The position numbers and the translations under genes were made by a program. A stretch of 51,496 bases of DNA from contig CDROCS010006440.1 in NCBI GenBank assembly GCA_977020255.1, positions 1-51,496 of the forward strand, read 5' to 3'. Positions 15,707 through 38,783 of the stretch are shown here, in pieces (the stretch's first letter is position 1; each line of letters begins with the position of its first letter). The stretch comes from Obrimoposthia wandeli. Taxonomy: Eukaryota. The notes under the pieces were generated by a model that worked only from the letters and a program-made list of their open reading frames with translations, ran no database searches and had not been told where the DNA came from.

Positions 15707-16964
15707 ATGAATACATATTTAAACAAATTTAAATTGTATGACTCAATCCAAAAAACTCTTTTTTATAAACTCCCTGAGAATGAACAAGAGTTTATAAAAA
15801 ATAAATCACTTGAACTAAAGTTCTCTCATCAAGAGATAAAACAAATAATAGATATTGCTAGAGACCTAAGTACTTGGGATGAAAAAAATATAGTAGATAT
15901 TTTTCCAGACCATGACCAAAAAAAAGTTGTCTTTACTAGACTTCGTAAGGCTTATGAAGATATAAGAAATAAACCAAACTCTTATGAAAACTTTGAACTT
16001 AAAAATATTCCTCAAGAACAGAAGTTCACTTTTAAAACGCAAGCTAAAGATGGCTTTGGCCTTGGGCTTTGTCCTGTTGCATCTGAGAAAACTAGATGTT
16101 GTAATCTTTTAACTCTAGATGCAGTGGAGAGCTGTGGATTTGATTGTTCATACTGTTCTATTCAGAGTTTTTACAATCAAAATACAATCACATTTGACTC
16201 CAACTTCGCGGATAAACTAAAAAACCTAAATCTAGATAAAAACAAGACTTACCATATAGGTACAGGTCAAGCTTCTGACTCACTTATGTGGGGAAATCGT
16301 GAAGGTATCTTAGATGCACTTTTTCTTTTTGCAAAAGAGAATCCAAATGTTATCTTAGAATTTAAAACAAAATCAGACAAGATAAGCTATTTTCTAGAAA
16401 ATGAAGTACCAAATAACATACTATGTACTTGGTCACTTAACACTCCTACAATCATTGAAAATGAAGAGCATCTAAGTGCTTCTCTTGATAAGAGATTAGC
16501 ATCTGCAAGAGCTGTTGCAGATAAGGGTGTAAAAGTCGGTTTTCACTTTCATCCAATAGTACAATATGAAAAATTATCTAGATGATTATGCTCTAGTGTA
16601 TGAAAGACTTTTAAAAGAGTTTAAATCTAGCGAAGTTGCACTTGTAAGTTTTGGTACACTTACCTTTATAAAGCCTGTTATCAAACAACTTAGAGATAGA
16701 GAATTTAAAAGTAAAATAACGCAGATGCCTTTTGAAAATGCAAGTGGAAAAAGTTCTTATCCTGATTCTATAAAAGTAGAGATGTTTAAACATGCTTATG
16801 AGAGTTTTACTCCTTGGCACAAAGATGTGTTTTTCTACCTTTGTATGGAAGAACACCAGATGTGGAGCAAAACCTTTGGTTATCAATACTCTACAAATAA
16901 CGACTTTGAGAGAGCTATGCTTAGTTCTTACTCTACAAAACTAAATTTGGAGTTTTTAATATGA
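15707..16964 (+). CDS. Spore-photoproduct-lyase-like radical SAM protein; frameshift near 16570
   Basis: CGFDCSYC (CxxxCxxC), LEFKTKS, WSLN, RL.SA, GFHFHP, YLCME. Confidence 0.85.
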
Positions 16965-26726: not shown

Positions 26727-26938
26727 TGGGAAAGAAAAAGAAAAAAAGTATAGAACTTTCAGATAAAAAAATCAAATTTACAGTTGATAAAATTTCATAC
26801 AAAGCAATTCGATACTATCCTACTGCTATGAGTCTAGATGCTATGGCTACAGACGAAGATGGTGAAAAGATAGGTGTAAAAAACCTTCCTTTTGCATATA
26901 TTCCAAAAGATATAAAGAAACTTATTAAGCCAAATTAA
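26726..26938 (+). CDS. Small basic hypothetical protein
   Basis: 70 aa ORF overlapping the cvfB stop by one base; AAGGA SD. Confidence 0.75.
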
Positions 26939-26975
26939 CTATAATTGTTCCAAATATAAAAAAGGAACTACTTTC

Positions 26976-28188
26976 ATGTCTACACCTTACTTAGAGTCAA
27001 CTCCAGATGAAAATGGATTTTTTGGAAAATTTGGAGGCTCTTTTATCCCTCCAGTTTTAGAAAAACCATTTGCTGATATCACTCAAGCCTACAAAGAGTT
27101 AAAAGATTCTCCGGAGTTTATTAAAGAACTTAAATATGTTAGAAAGCACTATCAGGGGAGACCTACTCCTATCTCTTTTGCAAAAAATTTAACCCAGCTT
27201 TGTGGCGGGGCAAAAATCTACTTAAAAAGAGAAGACTTAAATCATACAGGAGCACATAAACTAAACCACTGTATGGCTGAAGTAATACTGGCAAAGCATC
27301 TAGGAAAAACAAAGGTAATTGCTGAAACTGGTGCAGGACAACATGGGGTTGCTCTTGCAACAGCGGCAGCTTACTTTGGACTAGAGTGTGAGATTCATAT
27401 GGGTGAGGTAGATATTGCTAAAGAGCATCCAAATGTTATTCGCATGAAAATTCTTGGTGCTAAGATCATCCCTGTGACTCACGGATTAAAAACTTTAAAA
27501 GAAGCAGTTGATTCTGCATTTGACAGCTATGTTATAAACAGTATATTTACTGCACCTATCAGGCGTTGTTGGACCTCATCCTTTTCCAATGATGGTAAGA
27601 GATTTTCAGTCTGTTATAGGACATGAAGCAAAAGAGCAGTTTTGTGAGCATGAAGAGAATCTTCCAGATGCAGTAGTTGCATGTGTTGGTGGTGGAAGTA
27701 ATGCTATGGGTATCTTTGCTGGATTTATTGACGACAAAGAAGTAGAACTTCACGGTGTTGAACCAATGGGTAAAGGTGACAAACTTGGTGAACACGCTGC
27801 ATCTCTTACTCATGGAGAAGAGGGAATAATGCACGGATTTAACTCTATAATGCTTAAAAGTGCAGATGGTGAGCCTGCTCCTGTTTACTCTATTGGTTCT
27901 GGTATTGATTATCCATCTGTTGGACCTGAACATGCACATCTTCAAGCAATAGGCAGAACAACTGTTGGTCTTTGTAATGATGAAGAGGCAATAGATGCTT
28001 TCTTTAAACTTTCTCAACTAGAAGGTATCATACCTGCATTAGAATCTGCTCACGCTGTAGGATATGCGATGAAGTTAGCTAAGACTATGAGTAGCGATCA
28101 AACTATCCTTATAAATCTAAGTGGTAGAGGAGACAAAGATATTGACTTCATGGTTGAAAACCACCCTATTCCAAACGCTAAATTTTAG
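26976..28188 (+). CDS. trpB: Tryptophan synthase beta subunit, stand-alone; frameshift near 27530-27590
   Basis: [12 protein letters not shown] (PLP Lys), [41 protein letters not shown]. Confidence 0.95.
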
Positions 28189-30599: not shown

Positions 30600-31312
30600 A
30601 ATATTTTCTCTTTTAAAAAACAGCCTACACCATAAGGCTTTTTAGAATAAAACTCTTTAGAGTGGTTTACTATAAGTGCATGATACTCTTGAAAAACTAT
30701 CACTCTGTCTTTTTCATCTTTGATAGATGCTTCTAAAGAGTCTTGCATCAGTTTTTTCATATCCTTATATTTTGCCCTCTCATCTATAAGTCCAAGTTCT
30801 AAGAGAACTCTTTTAGTATATGCATCTACTTTAAACTCTGGCATCTTATATCCATATAAGAGTATAGAGTCAGCAGTTTCTTCTCCTATCCCTAAAACTG
30901 ATAAAAGCTCATTTCTTGAAGGAACTTTTGCATCTAAAGATTCAAAAAAGGAGATAAACTCTAAAATATACTTAGCTTTTTGATTATGATATCCAGATGG
31001 TTTTATAGCAAGTTTTAGCTCATCTATATCTAAATCTTTTATTACTTTTGGAGTTAATGCATCTAAGTTTTTTAGATTATGAAGAGATTTCACAACGGAA
31101 GTAAAACTTGTATTTTGTGTAAGTATAGAGCCTAAACAAACTTCAAATAGCTCGTTTGCATCTCTTGGAAAAGTATAGTCCTCTATATGATAACCATCAG
31201 TATTTCCATTTTTAGACTTGTTTGCTCCATCATGGTTTATAAATGGCCACCAACCCTGAGGTCCATAAGCTTCATAAAGAATTTTATAAATATCATATAT
31301 TTTATTTGTCAT
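30596..31312 (-). CDS. HhH-GPD DNA glycosylase without an Fe-S cluster (MagIII-like)
   Basis: GPQGWWP, ILTQNT, IKPSGY..QKA, GIGEETADSILLY, VDAYT.R. Confidence 0.88.
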   Translation of the reverse strand: MTNKIYDIYKILYEAYGPQGWWPFINHDGANKSKNGNTDGYHIEDYTFPRDANELFEVCLGSILTQNTSFTSVVKSLHNLKNLDALTPKVIKDLDIDELKLAIKPSGYHNQKAKYILEFISFFESLDAKVPSRNELLSVLGIGEETADSILLYGYKMPEFKVDAYTKRVLLELGLIDERAKYKDMKKLMQDSLEASIKDEKDRVIVFQEYHALIVNHSKEFYSKKPYGVGCFLKEKIL

Positions 31313-32146
31313 GTCTCTCCTTCATTGCCTCGTAAGCAAGTATAATTTTTTTTCTCTGTATTGTCCATCTATAACCACTCATAGCACCTGACTTCTTCCT
31401 ATAACCCTATGACATGGTATAAGATAAGATACATCATTCGAGCCTATAGCAGTTGCAACTGCTCTGACTGCCTTTGGTTTATCTATGTAGTTTGCTATGT
31501 CTTGGTAAGTACTAAGACTTGCATCTGGGATATTTAAAAGTGCTTTCCAAACATTTATCTGAAAGTTGGTTCCTTTGACAAATATATCCACTTTTTTCTT
31601 ATCTAAAAATATACTCTTTAACTGTCCATTTATTTTTTTATCATCACGAATTAAAAGAGCATTTGACCAACTTTTTTCTAACTCGTTGAGTAGTTTTTCT
31701 TCATCTTCATCAAAAGCTAAAAAACAAATGCCTCTCTTTGTAGATGCCAAGAGAGCTTTACCAAAAGGAGTATCACCATATCCGTAAACTATCTCTGTAT
31801 CTTTACCAAGCTCTTTATACTCTTTTGGAGTCACTCCAACAAAGTTGACAAACATATCATGAAGTCTACTTGAACTTGTAAGACCAAGCTCTAAAGAGGT
31901 CTCTAGTATACTCTTTGACTCTTTTAGGTGTGTTTTTGCGTACTCCAATGTAGTAGCATGCAAAAACTGAATTGGCGTTACACCAACATACTCTTGAAAA
32001 AGTCTACTAAAGTGAAACTTACTTAATCCTACATGTTTAGCTATTGTATCTAGTGAAGGTTTTTCTTTGAAGTTTTCATCTATATAATTTATCACTTCTT
32101 CTATCTTTTTATAATTATCACTATCTATTTTCAAACTATTTTGCAT
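31302..32146 (-). CDS. AraC-HTH plus O6-methylguanine-DNA methyltransferase (Ada-like); frameshift near 31395
   Basis: HFSRLF..YVG.TP, GT.FQ..VW..L, PCHRV active site; corrected tail SGAMSGYRWTIQRKKIILAYE. Confidence 0.9.
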
Positions 32147-32297
32147 CTATAGCTCCTAAGTTAAAGCAATTAAAAATAGTATAACAAAAACAATGCTTAG
32201 CAACAATCCAAATATTGCTAAATAGCAAATTTAAATCAAAACAATTATACCAAACACTAAGGCAAAATATAGGATAATGAAACAAAGTAGGAGTGCA

Positions 32298-33089
32298 ATG
32301 GTGGTTTTAAAATTTATAGAGAATATTGGCGATAAAACTCTTTATACACTCTCTTCATTTTATGAAGCTCTAAAGTTCACATTTATTTGTATAGTACACC
32401 TTCTTAAACCTAGTAGTTATAATCCTGCAATGAGAATGGTTCTTACAAAACAAATATATTTTACAGCAGTTGGAATTATTCCACTATTTATGACTATGGC
32501 AATTTTCTTTGGCTCTATAATCATCGGGGTTGTTATTGCTCTTGCAACTGAGTATAATTTACAAGATCAGATTGGTTCTATTATTATTACTTTTGTTGTT
32601 AATGAATTTTCTCCTTTTTTCACTGCTTTACTAATTTCTCTTAGGTCTTCAAGTGCAGTCAACACTGAGATAGCAGTTATGAAAGTAAATAAAGAACTTA
32701 ACACATTAAAAGAGTATAAAATAGATCTTATTGGCTATCTATTTTTACCAAGGATAATCAGTGGAATGATTAGTGTAGTTTCTCTGTCTATTTTATTTGC
32801 AGTTATCATGCTTAGTAGTGGGTACTTATTTACTCTTTTTTATATGAATATGGATTTTCATACTTATAAATATATACTCATTAATGCCATAGAGGTTAAA
32901 GATTTAGTAATTTTACTTATTAAAAGTATGGCTTTTGGTTTTGTTACAATGCTCATCCCAATCTATAGTGGGCTAAATACAGCAGATGCATATACAGCGA
33001 TTCCCATATCTGTTTTAAACGGAATGGTTAAGCTTTTTATAGCATTATTTTTCATTGAGGTGTTATCATTACTACTACAACTAATATAA
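32298..33089 (+). CDS. mlaE: MlaE-family ABC permease (ORF track start 32277; 32298 has an AGGAG SD)
   Basis: KQIYFT, NEFSPFFTALLISLRSSSA..TE.AVMKV..E...L, LPRIISG. Confidence 0.88.
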   Translation: MVVLKFIENIGDKTLYTLSSFYEALKFTFICIVHLLKPSSYNPAMRMVLTKQIYFTAVGIIPLFMTMAIFFGSIIIGVVIALATEYNLQDQIGSIIITFVVNEFSPFFTALLISLRSSSAVNTEIAVMKVNKELNTLKEYKIDLIGYLFLPRIISGMISVVSLSILFAVIMLSSGYLFTLFYMNMDFHTYKYILINAIEVKDLVILLIKSMAFGFVTMLIPIYSGLNTADAYTAIPISVLNGMVKLFIALFFIEVLSLLLQLI

Positions 33090-33545
33090 AACTATTTGAG
33101 CAATACAATGAGATAGACAACTATCTAGCAAATGCAGAGGACTACTCTTTAATCTCTAAAAACACACCTCTTATATCTAATCTTAATATGATAGAAAATA
33201 TTGCTCTTATTAAAGACAAGTACATGAGCATTTAGCAAGTACCCTCAGGCACAAAAATTGCAGAGTGATTATCTTAAGAAAGTCAACCTTGAAAATATTG
33301 GACTAAATAGACTAACCCAATGTAATTCATTGGAAATATTTTACGTCTGCTTAATCCGTGCACTTATGAGTAAAGAGATGAATGTTATAATAATATCTCC
33401 ATTTCGTATTATTGATAATTTAAGCGACATAGAGATAATTGTATCAGCCATAAAAAAATTAGATGCTATAAAAAATATTCTAATTTTAGACATAATCTCA
33501 TACAAAGCACACTATAAAGGATCTTTATGCAATATAGTAAAATGA
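33090..33545 (+). CDS. Degenerate ABC-ATPase-like protein lacking Walker A, signature and Walker B; frameshifted, start unclear
   Basis: PLISNLNMIENIAL...L..VNL...CNSLE...LIRALM...IIISP aligns by eye to the middle of an ABC nucleotide-binding domain. Confidence 0.6.
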
Positions 33546-34462
33546 AACTATCAGTAGGTATTTTTGTAATTATTTTTTTCCTTACTATAGTATCTGCACT
33601 ATATATGCTTCTTGAAGATAAAGGTACGTTTGACAAAAGATATAATTATCATTTTACAACTGATAGTGCTGCATTTTTTAGCGTAGGAATGCCTTTAAAA
33701 TTTTCTGGTTTTGATATTGGGGTAATTGACAATATATCTTTGAATGATGATGGAACTGTTTATATGACATTTTCTGTTAATGAGAAAAATAGAAGATGGA
33801 TAACAAAAGATAGTGTTTTAATGATTATAAAGCCACTTATTGGTTCAGCTCATATTGTAGTTTATTCGGTAATTGACAATGAAGTACTTGAAGTAAATTC
33901 TGAACTAGCAATCGTAGAGAGTGATGATATAAACGACATGATTTCTAAGCTAGAACCTGCTGTTGATAAAATTATAGATATTATAAATAACATAGACACT
34001 ATTACAACTTATATTGCAAGTGAAGATTCAGACTTAATGAGAGCTCTTCATAATATTAAAGTCTTTACTTCAAATCTATCAAACAACGATTCATTATTGA
34101 CTAGTTTAACAGGAGATAAGGAATCTACAAACAGTATGATTGCTTCTTTAAATAAAACAACGCAGATAATGCAAGAACTGCATAATATAAGTAAAAATAT
34201 CAGTAAAACAACATCTAATCTTGATAAAGAGATAATAGACCCTTCATCCTCTGTAATAAAAGAACTAGAGGGAATTATGAAAGATGTAAAGCAAAAGTTA
34301 GATGCACTAGATGGAACAGTTAAAGCTGTTGGAACTTATGATAGTGATTTAGTAGAGTTAAAAGAGCAGATATCTGTAAGTGTTCAAAAGTCTAATCAAA
34401 TCATGGAGAAGGTAGATGCTCTAATGCAAGATGAAACTAAACAGGAGGTATCACTGCCATGA
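33527..34462 (+). CDS. mlaD: MlaD/MCE-domain protein with a long helical extension
   Basis: N-terminal TM, VG.PLKFSGFDIGV..I.L, long amphipathic C-terminus. Confidence 0.88.
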   Translation: MQYSKMKLSVGIFVIIFFLTIVSALYMLLEDKGTFDKRYNYHFTTDSAAFFSVGMPLKFSGFDIGVIDNISLNDDGTVYMTFSVNEKNRRWITKDSVLMIIKPLIGSAHIVVYSVIDNEVLEVNSELAIVESDDINDMISKLEPAVDKIIDIINNIDTITTYIASEDSDLMRALHNIKVFTSNLSNNDSLLTSLTGDKESTNSMIASLNKTTQIMQELHNISKNISKTTSNLDKEIIDPSSSVIKELEGIMKDVKQKLDALDGTVKAVGTYDSDLVELKEQISVSVQKSNQIMEKVDALMQDETKQEVSLP

Positions 34463-35112
34463 TTAAAATAATAGTTTTGTCTATTGGTTTACTTCTATTT
34501 AGTGCTTGTTCTTTTAAATCTGTCCCTAATCAGTGGCAATACAAAAGTACAACAGCCTTTGACTCTTACAAAACAAACTTTCTAAGTTCTAAAGATGCTT
34601 TAGCAAAAAATGATTTAAGTCGAGCAGTAAAACATGCAAAACAGAGTGCAGATTTAAATATGCTTGCACGAGTTTATTTAGGTAAATGTGCTTTAAATAT
34701 TAGTGTTGGAGAAGATGACAAGTGTCAAGAGTATGTTAATATCTCTGATTTAGTAAATAACAAAACTCTAGATGCTTATTATAATTTTATAACATTAAAA
34801 AATGAATATATTATAGATGACCTAAATAATACATATAAAGACTTTGCTTCGCATCTTATGCAAAAAGATTTTAAAAAATCAAATGAAGAAATACTACAAA
34901 TTGATAAAGTGACTTCCAAACTTTTAGCTGCATCTCTAATAAGAGATAAATTAACGCAATCAACTAGATATGAGCTTATAAAGAATGCTTCTTTTTATGG
35001 TTATAAAAAAAGTGTATTATTTTGGTTGAATGAGGCAAGAGTTAATGCTATAAATGAAGATAAACGTAATAACTTATCTAAGAAAATATCTATTTTGAAA
35101 TCAAAGGATTAA
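34459..35112 (+). CDS. Predicted lipoprotein
   Basis: Lipobox LFSAC at residues 13-17; ATGA overlap with mlaD. Confidence 0.8.
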   Translation: MIKIIVLSIGLLLFSACSFKSVPNQWQYKSTTAFDSYKTNFLSSKDALAKNDLSRAVKHAKQSADLNMLARVYLGKCALNISVGEDDKCQEYVNISDLVNNKTLDAYYNFITLKNEYIIDDLNNTYKDFASHLMQKDFKKSNEEILQIDKVTSKLLAASLIRDKLTQSTRYELIKNASFYGYKKSVLFWLNEARVNAINEDKRNNLSKKISILKSKD

Positions 35113-35603: not shown

Positions 35604-36485
35604 ATGAAATTTTTTTTATTAATAAGCATAAGCGTCTTCACACTTCTTGCATCTGATGCTTTTATCACTCCCAATGAATTAAAAAACTCACTTGAAAAAA
35701 AGAATTTAATTATCATAGATGTTTCAGATGCTCTTACTTATAAAACCAGTCATATTAAAGGCGCTATTAACTCTGATGTTTCTAAATTTATAAATCAAGA
35801 ACCAGAAAATGTATACTCACTTATGAACTCACCTGAGATTATCCAAGAAGAGCTAAGAAACCTTGGTATTAATCAAGATTCTCACGTAGTTATTTATTCG
35901 CATAATACAGATAAGGGTGTTTTAGAATCTAGTTATTTAGCTTTCTTGTTACTATATAGTGGCTTCGAGAACCTTACAATCTTAGATGGTGGATATGTAT
36001 CTTGGGTATTTGAAAATGAAAGATTAACTTCTGCAACTCCTACAGATATTGAAGATGAGGGGAATATAGTTGTAAAACCTAATAAAAACTTGTTAATAAC
36101 AATGGATTCAATAAAAAGCTCTTTAAGTTCAACGATTATTATAGATGCTAGATCACCACAAATCTATTATGGTATAGAACGTTCAAATGGGATAAGTTCA
36201 ATTGGACATATTCCACAGGCTAAAAGTAGTTTTTACAAAAATAATTTTTTAAGAGACGGTTAACTTAGAAATCAAAATGAGCTAGAAAAAATCTATATAG
36301 ATGGACATGAATTAAAAAGTAGTGATGAAATAGTTGTATATAGTAATAATGTTTTTTCTGCAAGCATGGAATTTTATATTTTATATAAACAAATGGGATT
36401 TAAGAATACAAAACTTTACGAAGCTTCGCTTTTAGAATGGGAAAATAATTCAGATTTACCTATGACTAGGTTTAAGTGGGAATAG
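35604..36485 (+). CDS. Exported tandem rhodanese-domain protein with no Cys; frameshift near 36260
   Basis: Signal peptide; HIKGA, LDGGY..W, IDAR...Y.G, GHIP.A, LYEASL.EW. Confidence 0.85.
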
Positions 36486-37521: not shown

Positions 37522-38783
37522 TTATAGTCCAACAGCACTTAGCGTCTCATATTTACTCATGTAAACCTGAGCCTCAATTTTTCTCATAGTATCTAGAGCA
37601 ACTTGAACAACGATTAAAACCGCTGTACCACCAAAGAAGAAAGGTACACCCATCCCCTTGATAATCATAAATGGTAGAGTTGCAACAAGACCAAGGTATA
37701 AAGCACCTGTAAAAGTTAATCTACTAGCAGTTTCATTTAAAAACTCCATAGTAGCTTTACCAGTACGGATACCTGGAATAAATCCGCCTTGTCTCTTTAG
37801 ATTGTCTGAAATATCTTTTGCATTAAATGTAATCGAAGCATAAAAGAATGCAAAGAAACAACAAAGCAAAATGTCATAAAGTTAAAAAAGTAACTATTAG
37901 GATTTAAAAAGTCAGCAATTCCCTGAATAGTAGGGTTTGTACTACTTGATAAAACTGTCATAGGAAACATTAAAATCGCAGATGCGAAGATAACTGGAAT
38001 AACACCAGCTAAGTTTACCTTGATAGGAATATAATTCATTACTCTTTTATTTTGATTTTGCATCATAACTTTTTTAGCATATGTAACAGGTACACGACGC
38101 TCACCAAGTTCAACGTAAATAATAATTGCTACAGTACCTAATATAAGGGCTAAAATACCTATTACAGTTAAGAATCCCATAGCACCAGTATTTACCATTG
38201 TAATCGTTTGACCAATTGCACTTGGAATAGCTGAAACAATACCAGCAAAGATAATAAGTGAAATACCGTTACCGATACCACTTTGTGTAATCTGCTCACC
38301 AATCCACATTAATAACATAGTTCCTGCTAACATTGAAACAGCAGAAAGAATTATAAATGTATTATGATCAGCTAAAATAGCACTATTACCATTTGGACCA
38401 GTTAAACTTTGTAGACCTACACTAATACCAATCGCTTGAATAATTGTAATAACAATAGTCGCATAACGAATTATTTGCATGTACTTAACCATTCCGTCAC
38501 GTTCTTTTTTCATTTGACCTAGAGGAGCGAAAGTAGCAGCTAAAAGTTCCATGATGATTGAAGCAGTGATGTAAGGCATAATACCAAGAGCGATGATAGA
38601 CATTCTCTCAACAGCATTTCCACTAAACATATTAAATAGACCTAGTGCGTCAGCTTGGTGTGAATCGAAAAATGAAGCAATAACAGCAGTATCTACGCCA
38701 GGAACTGGCACGTATGCCAGTAGGCGGTAGATGAATAAAAACCCGATAGTAATAAGTATCTTATTTACAAGATTTTTATTCAC
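37522..38783 (-). CDS. secY: Preprotein translocase SecY; homopolymer frameshift near 37845-37880
   Basis: SIIALGIMPYITASII, GIGNGISLII, IPIKVN.AGVIP, LKRQGGFIPGIRTG, GGTAVLIVV. Confidence 0.98.

Follow-up and report, generated by a model that had tools for sequence, protein, structure and literature searches.

A conserved ABC-type pseudo-ATPase, apparently translated from an AUU codon, in an MCE transport operon of Sulfurimonas-like bacteria

We analysed a window of 51,496 nt, which comprises the whole of contig CDROCS010006440.1 (C6440, free of N) in the Obrimoposthia wandeli assembly GCA_977020255.1. The subject of this report is a four-gene operon of the Mla/mammalian cell entry (MCE) type within the window, in which a gene for a predicted pseudo-ATPase, related to ATP-binding cassette (ABC) ATPases, lies between the permease gene and the MCE gene. 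The assembly has a size of 1.35 Gb in 6912 contigs, many of them bacterial. The closest relatives of the MlaE-like permease were found in Sulfurimonas and other Sulfurimonadaceae genomes (67-86% identity), which by protein similarity assigns the contig to a Sulfurimonas-like bacterium whose DNA was co-assembled with that of a large host genome. For the comparative analyses, a profile and alignment of the pseudo-ATPase (A1) was built from 33 orthologues, 251 Campylobacteria genomes were sampled evenly, and the system-wide gene inventory was drawn from the complete genome of a relative, Sulfurimonas sp. CS5. A search of the same assembly with the family profile revealed no second pseudo-ATPase copy beyond that in the window; it otherwise returned weak full-length ABC matches.

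All four genes are encoded on the forward (+) strand. The first (32277-33089) encodes an MlaE-like permease of 270 aa matching PF02405 (E = 2.5e-43, 148.6 bits). The third (33527-34462) encodes a long MlaD-like MCE protein of 311 aa, which matches PF02470 with 31 bits (cut-off 25.1) as well as TIGR04430 and TIGR00996, and consists of a transmembrane (TM) helix, one MCE domain, and a long tail of ~180 helical residues. The fourth (34459-35112) encodes a lipoprotein of 217 aa with the lipobox LLFSAC, predicted to be all-helical and similar to tetratricopeptide repeat (TPR) proteins. An MlaE-family permease and an MCE-domain protein, the two hallmarks of an Mla/MCE system, are thus both present (PF02405 and PF02470). 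The gap of 438 nt between the permease and MCE genes is filled by an ABC-like frame. An earlier note on this DNA had read the order as mlaE, an ABC-like open reading frame (ORF), a long MCE protein, and a lipoprotein, and this order is borne out by the Pfam matches and the lipobox. The lipoprotein gene overlaps the MCE stop codon (ATGA), and a second in-frame ATG of the MCE gene, at 33542, overlaps the stop codon of the pseudo-ATPase gene in the same manner (ATGA). These overlaps with the preceding genes point to one tightly coupled operon of four genes. A scan for promoters and terminators returned matches at the level expected by chance in AT-rich DNA.

The second gene of the operon was described in the earlier note as a single ORF of ~150 aa. 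Its ABC-like content stood up to analysis; its single frame did not, since the window copy is read in three frames separated by two breaks that had been missed. Piece 1 (33068-33217, residues 1-50) includes the block TPLISNLNxxENIAL and matches the family profile at 33068-33220 (E = 2.7e-17). Compared with all orthologues in the DNA alignment (A2), two extra bases follow at 33218-33219. According to the DNA alignment and translation, piece 2 (33220-33240) covers residues 51-57 (VHEHLAS) and is followed by a second pair of extra bases (33241-33242), situated in a variable loop. Piece 3 (33243-33545) covers residues 58-157 and the TGA stop codon (33543-33545), and accounts for most of a further family-profile match (E = 7.0e-33). 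The two dinucleotides are extra with respect to the six orthologues aligned. Taken together, the pieces amount to 50 + 7 + 100 = 157 codons, the usual length in this family, and all ten family-invariant residues are kept.

Comparison of the 33-orthologue profile with the PDB retrieved ABC ATPases almost exclusively, the two non-ABC rows being weak (E = 0.3-0.5). The best match was MacB (E = 3.2e-6), followed by a pneumococcal ABC ATPase (E = 2e-5), ArtP (E = 9e-5), and then LptB, LolD, and others. Profile positions 25-145 aligned to the stretch of the ABC domain from just past the Q-loop to the H-loop strand, in agreement with the earlier view that the second ORF resembles the middle of an ABC ATPase. 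A structure predicted by AlphaFold2 from the orthologue alignment reached a predicted local distance difference test (pLDDT) value of 89.1 and a predicted template modelling (pTM) score of 0.86. Searching with this model in Foldseek (E = 1.7e-8, TMq 0.72) gave 371 matches at E ≤ 0.001, and the 50 best were all ABC domains, including E. coli MlaF. In VIA-align, 152 of the 157 residues were superposed (Z = 14-15, root-mean-square deviation 2.6-2.8 Å); the matching part of MlaF spans residues 33-217, i.e. ~30 residues more than the model has. Both the RecA-like core and the helical subdomain typical of a nucleotide-binding domain (NBD) can be recognised in the predicted model, together with the PDB profile matches. 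On the evidence of the model, the protein is a pseudo-ATPase that lacks the first ~30 residues of an NBD, ~30 internal residues including the P-loop, and the C-terminal tail.

The loss of ATPase motifs reported in the earlier note proved correct and was found to be shared across the whole family. The Walker A pattern [AG]x4G[KR][ST], said to be missing after the mlaE stop codon, was absent from every forward frame of 33000-33560 and from all 33 orthologues, and the model has only 2 residues between its first strand and its first helix. The columns corresponding to LSGGQ read (N)QC(S/N)S.E in the family, and those of the Walker B motif hhhhDE read (I/V)II.(T/S)P. The column of the Q-loop Gln is variable (K/S/I), and the site of the H-loop His reads ILD(T). 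In the window, the respective sequences QCNSLE and IIISP and the ILILD strand are all located on piece 3; the CNSLE, the IIISP lacking Asp-Glu, and the want of an H-loop had already been noted. Two distant members retain the Walker B Asp, as VIDRP. None of the features that characterise ABC_tran (PF00005), namely the signature, Walker B, the Q-loop Gln, and the H-loop His, was found. Likewise, the separate pieces of the window copy had no match in Pfam or NCBIfam; the Pfam gathering score for PF00005 was not reached, and only one of the 33 orthologues matched this family at all (E = 0.13). Because P-loop, Q-loop Gln, signature, Walker B Asp-Glu, and H-loop His are all lost, canonical ATP binding or hydrolysis by this protein is, as judged from the alignment, not possible.

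The most conserved part of the family is the block TPLISNLNxxENIAL, with the invariant residues P34, N38, L39, E43, and N44. This block aligns to the segment past the Q-loop, where the helical subdomain begins. In structures of ABC transporters, the region after the Q-loop forms the groove for the coupling helix of the permease. As a separate observation, the family contains two near-invariant cysteines, one at the Ser/Gly site of the signature and the other near the C-terminus, accompanied by a conserved His and an invariant Tyr (jointly A1 positions 84, 147, 148, and 153). This Cys/His/Tyr set is a candidate and may constitute a metal or redox site.

In the earlier note, the gene had been called a dead remnant. 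This was not borne out, as the family to which the gene belongs is conserved, evolves under purifying selection, and has translation signals of its own. At 34 Sulfurimonadaceae loci, the slot between the permease and MCE genes is occupied by a single frame without interruption, 156-170 codons long (156-158 except at two loci), and three distant Campylobacteria genomes show the same four-gene order with the same uninterrupted frame. All 37 loci displayed the truncated, motif-less architecture and none a full-length ATPase. In the protein database, the family corresponds to 444 clusters, all of which are labelled 'hypothetical' or carry a generic COG-style ABC label; no precomputed Pfam domain was present among the 120 clusters listed. 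Nei-Gojobori dN/dS values were 0.11-0.27 in the eight closest pairs, with a median of 0.28 for pairs with dS < 1.5. Furthermore, pseudo-ATPase and lipoprotein co-occur in exactly the same 11 of the 251 sampled Campylobacteria genomes. Given the low dN/dS, the family is a selected protein rather than a relic, catalytically dead but not genetically dead.

A non-functional relic in every lineage, conserved merely through overlap with or proximity to functional sequence, would fit the loss of every catalytic motif, the inconsistent start calls, and the want of a Pfam family. The dN/dS of 0.15-0.3, however, extends over ~470 nt, of which only ~22 nt overlap mlaE. An open frame of 156-158 codons is kept in 35 of the 37 loci despite saturated synonymous divergence, the fold is predicted with confidence, and co-occurrence with the lipoprotein is strict. 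The selection analysis therefore already contradicts such a relic, which we consider extremely improbable.

Conservation of the protein sequence begins right after the mlaE stop codon (out of 42 loci checked, TAA at 41 and TAG at one) and lies in the -1 frame relative to mlaE. In 13 of 28 species, no ATG, GTG, or TTG occurs within codons 1-40. For codons 8-24, pN/pS was 0.44 in the pseudo-ATPase frame, whereas the two alternative frames gave 1.05 and 1.29. Within the 3′ end of mlaE, a Shine-Dalgarno (SD)-like hexamer, GAGGTG (33057-33062), is followed after five bases by ATT (33068-33070), the proposed start codon. The combination of GAGGTG, five bases, and ATT was present in 42 of 42 loci checked (the hexamer being GAGGTC in one), and three distant members retain the hexamer. 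Across 39 sequences, the third positions of the mlaE codons GAG-GTG reached 100% and 97% identity; when the codons TCA-TTA are included, identity at third positions was 97-100%, vs about 0.36-0.6 at most neighbouring conserved codons. In two Arcobacteraceae loci without the gene, GAATTA or GAGTTT replaces the hexamer. Based on the conserved synonymous sites and the SD-ATT unit in all loci, the pseudo-ATPase appears to be translated from AUU with a near-optimal SD sequence and with no conserved canonical start codon. A gene known to start with AUU is infC. We infer that this weak start has been frozen, as the overlapping Leu codon of mlaE permits xTT alone at this site. Gene callers place the start differently, with predicted lengths in the database ranging from 117 to 149 aa; since translation appears to begin at the conserved AUU, the start codon of the family would be systematically mis-called.

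The same region could conceivably be read in another way, with ribosomes undergoing a programmed -1 frameshift close to where mlaE ends, so that the ABC-like domain is fused to MlaE. The ORF does overlap mlaE in its -1 frame without a canonical start codon, and SD-like elements such as the upstream GAGGTG can stimulate frameshifting. Yet no conserved slippery heptamer was detected from GAGGTG to the TAA stop codon, and many species have a TGA that ends the -1 frame just ahead of the SD-ATT unit. Moreover, the spacing between the SD sequence and ATT is optimal for initiation, with ATT invariant at the loci checked. A frameshift product is thus very unlikely.

The two breaks in the window copy have to be considered separately. 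Among the ~13 genes in the syntenic 12 kb, five were broken as judged by tblastn against orthologous ORFs, while identity was about 70-95% on either side of the breaks. One broken gene is secY (37522-38783, - strand), which is split into two overlapping ORFs by a frame change at a T-run (37868-37871); either side of the break is 82-96% identical to orthologues (91-94% to the nearest). For secY, an essential gene, the break probably reflects a single-base error of the assembly. Because an essential gene is broken on the same contig, errors of assembly or consensus are favoured for the pseudo-ATPase gene as well, and we regard it as fairly likely that the frame breaks of the window are assembly errors on a noisy bacterial contig.

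Several observations speak against this explanation and for a real, recent inactivation, in which two true 2-nt insertions would have produced a pseudogene in this organism while the gene remains functional in relatives. Both breaks are 2-nt extras and not homopolymer slips. Contigs of the one public sequencing run containing the stretch match the window and show no indels relative to it, and no breaks were apparent in the contig's two ribosomal-protein operons, which fits real decay slightly better than random error. In addition, the subunit has already been lost from the Arcobacteraceae loci. On the other side, the essential secY is also broken, at a T-run; the five broken genes retain high identity on both sides; and the ORF is otherwise perfect, in length and in its invariant residues. 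Also, the public run probably derives from the same source sample, has a depth of only 1-10, and its contigs may miss both break sites. Inactivation in this organism is accordingly a possibility, albeit one to which we give clearly less credence than to assembly error.

Turning to the other components, the full length of the MlaE-like permease could be aligned with residues 3-245 of E. coli MlaE (E = 3.6e-18). The coupling helix of MlaE sits between TM2 and TM3 (PMC7790496). In the permease, the coupling-helix region corresponds to residues ~111-160, and the stretch comprising TM2, the coupling helix, and TM3 ranks among the most conserved, with column identities of 0.85-0.97. For the lipoprotein, an AlphaFold2 model (pLDDT 92.8) predicted 12 helices forming a helical repeat. 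It had only weak, generic TPR-type matches among PDB folds and resembled uncharacterised Atlas clusters (TM score 0.81-0.87). In Pfam, nothing exceeded the cut-off for the lipoprotein; there was a weak match to DUF2624, and the PqiC family was not among the weak matches. In a word search of its profile, the 120 matches listed were all unnamed or from Campylobacterota or unclassified bacteria.

The complete CS5 genome contains exactly two MlaE/MlaD loci, the pseudo-ATPase operon and a canonical mlaE-mlaF-mlaD operon. The latter encodes an MlaE of 363 aa and an MlaF of 247 aa with intact GPSGSGKT, ISGGM, LDEPT, and SHD motifs; an MlaF encoded elsewhere, as the earlier note had envisaged, is therefore present in intact form at a separate locus in this relative. 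The permeases of the two operons are only 27% identical. Compared with the permease core, the canonical CS5 MlaE (L051:740-2571, - strand) carries an additional N-terminal domain of ~100 aa, which may be a fused STAS/MlaB-like module. No match to MlaC (PF05494) or MlaA (PF04333) was found in the complete CS5 genome, and both CS5 MCE proteins are long. The suggestion that a long MlaD bridges the periplasm without MlaC is thus plausible. No competent ATPase is encoded in the pseudo-ATPase operon. A split ATPase, with the missing part supplied by a separate small P-loop protein, was considered and rejected for CS5, where no short P-loop-only fragment was found: full-length ABC_tran matches all lie in open frames of at least 190 aa, and partial matches covering only the P-loop lie in frames of 208-1195 aa. 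Since all P-loop matches thus lie in long frames, there is no separate P-loop fragment to complement the pseudo-ATPase.

As to origin, the pseudo-ATPase gene sits at the mlaF position, between mlaE and mlaD, as in the canonical Sulfurimonas operon. In hhalign, the family matched CS5 MlaF over residues 82-190 (E = 1.5e-4). Set against this, CS5 MlaF ranks only 10th among the 19 CS5 ABC domains when compared with the family hidden Markov model, and every score is weak (at most 23 bits). Based on the slot between mlaE and mlaD, the ancestor was probably mlaF; this is a positional inference, and the sequence scores do not single out MlaF.

These results can be combined into a mechanistic proposal. 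A protein of ~157 aa derived from an ABC-type NBD would be made from an AUU codon inside the 3′ end of mlaE. It would retain the helical subdomain that normally grips the coupling helix and, in a second MCE system, would sit docked on the MlaE-like dimer as its structural cap. This system would be formed by the permease, a hexameric tube of the long MCE protein, and an outer-membrane TPR-like lipoprotein, together providing a trans-envelope conduit, with no ATP power at the pseudo-ATPase subunit. Docking is suggested by the conserved TPLISNLNxxENIAL block together with the conserved coupling-helix region of the permease. We are reasonably confident of the account as a whole, i.e. a conserved pseudo-ATPase subunit docking on the permease, an AUU start codon, and artefactual breaks in the window.

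A point against it is that two Arcobacteraceae loci (L046:4935-7393 and L047:3351-5726) encode permease, MCE protein, and lipoprotein but have neither a gene in the slot nor an ATPase gene nearby; from these loci, the subunit appears to be dispensable in some lineages. It was also observed by eye that the coupling-helix region of the L047 permease, a single sequence, is strongly diverged.

How the second MCE system would be powered is a separate matter. One option is that the permease has given up ATP hydrolysis altogether, the pseudo-ATPase acting as an obligate structural cap while lipid moves without ATP through a bridge of permease, MCE tube, and TPR-like lipoprotein; we put this forward tentatively, as one possibility and not as the expected outcome. 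Alternatively, transport could be ATP-driven after all, with MlaF or an orphan ABC ATPase recruited in trans; the pseudo-ATPase would then have a regulatory or placeholder role, sharing the coupling-helix sites or competing for them. The intact MlaF elsewhere in the complete relative genome and the strong conservation of the permease coupling helix are in keeping with such recruitment, and a precedent is provided by MceG, reported as the one ATPase that mycobacterial Mce systems share and that is encoded outside their operons (PMC9947336). However, the two permeases share little identity, the pseudo-ATPase retains the docking block and would fill that very site, and its degenerate signature could not complete the ATP site of a partner. 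We consider recruitment in trans rather unlikely.

Besides secY, the broken genes of the contig comprise (i) a tandem rhodanese gene (35604-36482, +) with an in-frame TAA at 36261-36263, whose orthologues are single ORFs of ~280-310 aa; (ii) a SplB-like radical S-adenosylmethionine gene (15968-16961, +) with a frame change near 16570, compared with a single 331-aa ORF in L025; (iii) a gene for a 425-aa protein (26916-28185, +) with one frame change vs its orthologues, near 27533-27556; and (iv) an Ada/Ogt-like regulator-methyltransferase gene (31305-32155, -) with one frame change near 31382-31394. Residue-level readings of the rhodanese gene should allow for contig errors.

Several known systems share some of these features. 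Like MlaFEDB of E. coli and A. baumannii (6XBD, PMC7790496), the present operon encodes an MlaE-type permease with a coupling helix and an MCE protein downstream, and the fold predicted for the product of the middle gene can be superposed on MlaF residues 33-217. It differs in that the ATP motifs are lost, neither MlaF's C-terminal extension nor MlaB is present, the MCE protein has 311 aa and is accompanied by a TPR-like lipoprotein, and MlaC and MlaA were not found in the relative genome. In Veillonella parvula, a minimal MlaEFD system without MlaA and MlaC was described, and its long helical MlaD was proposed to span the periplasm (PMC10665443). This 'bridge' type has the long MCE protein in common with the present system, as well as the lack of MlaA and MlaC found in CS5; it possesses a normal MlaF, whereas here a P-loop-less derivative occupies the slot and a lipoprotein gene is added. 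The Veillonella survey also names MlaDE clusters without MlaF, without analysing them (PMC10665443). Mycobacterial Mce1 and Mce4 are reported to have MlaE-like (YrbE) permeases and to share the ATPase MceG from another locus (PMC9947336, PMC9882608). An MlaE-like permease operon without a competent ATPase gene is common to both cases; the mycobacterial operons contain no NBD-like gene at all, whereas a conserved dead NBD is encoded here.

ATPase-free MCE systems are known from E. coli, namely PqiABC and LetAB, which form a helical needle or tube; Pqi includes an outer-membrane lipoprotein, and PqiA and LetA are not MlaE-type ABC permeases. The MCE tube, the lipoprotein partner (in Pqi), and the lack of an ATPase are shared with the operon described here. 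In contrast, its permease is of the MlaE type and its lipoprotein is TPR-like and does not match the PqiC family, so that neither a PqiA/LetA partner nor a PqiC-type lipoprotein was found among the permease and lipoprotein of the operon. Degenerate NBDs also occur in eukaryotes, e.g. the N-terminal NBD of ABCB5-beta, which lacks Walker A (PMC10828454). Retention of a motif-less ABC domain in a transporter is shared with these; they are, however, parts of multi-domain proteins with a competent NBD partner, whereas the protein described here would be a free-standing bacterial subunit from an operon without such a partner. Full-text literature searches brought up no paper describing the pseudo-ATPase family, any MCE system from Sulfurimonas, or an MCE transporter with a motif-less NBD subunit.

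MCE systems carry lipids across the Gram-negative envelope, and both their energy source and the direction of transport are under debate. A system with a motif-less subunit that is natural, widespread, and under selection would offer a direct test of whether the permease scaffold can work free of a motor or whether motors are shared, as in mycobacteria. If the reading of a permease that has given up ATP hydrolysis is true, no ABC-type MCE transporter would have been shown to be ATP-independent before this one, and the pseudo-ATPase would be the first free-standing 'pseudo-NBD' subunit. The finding also defines a hitherto unannotated protein family of 444 clusters.

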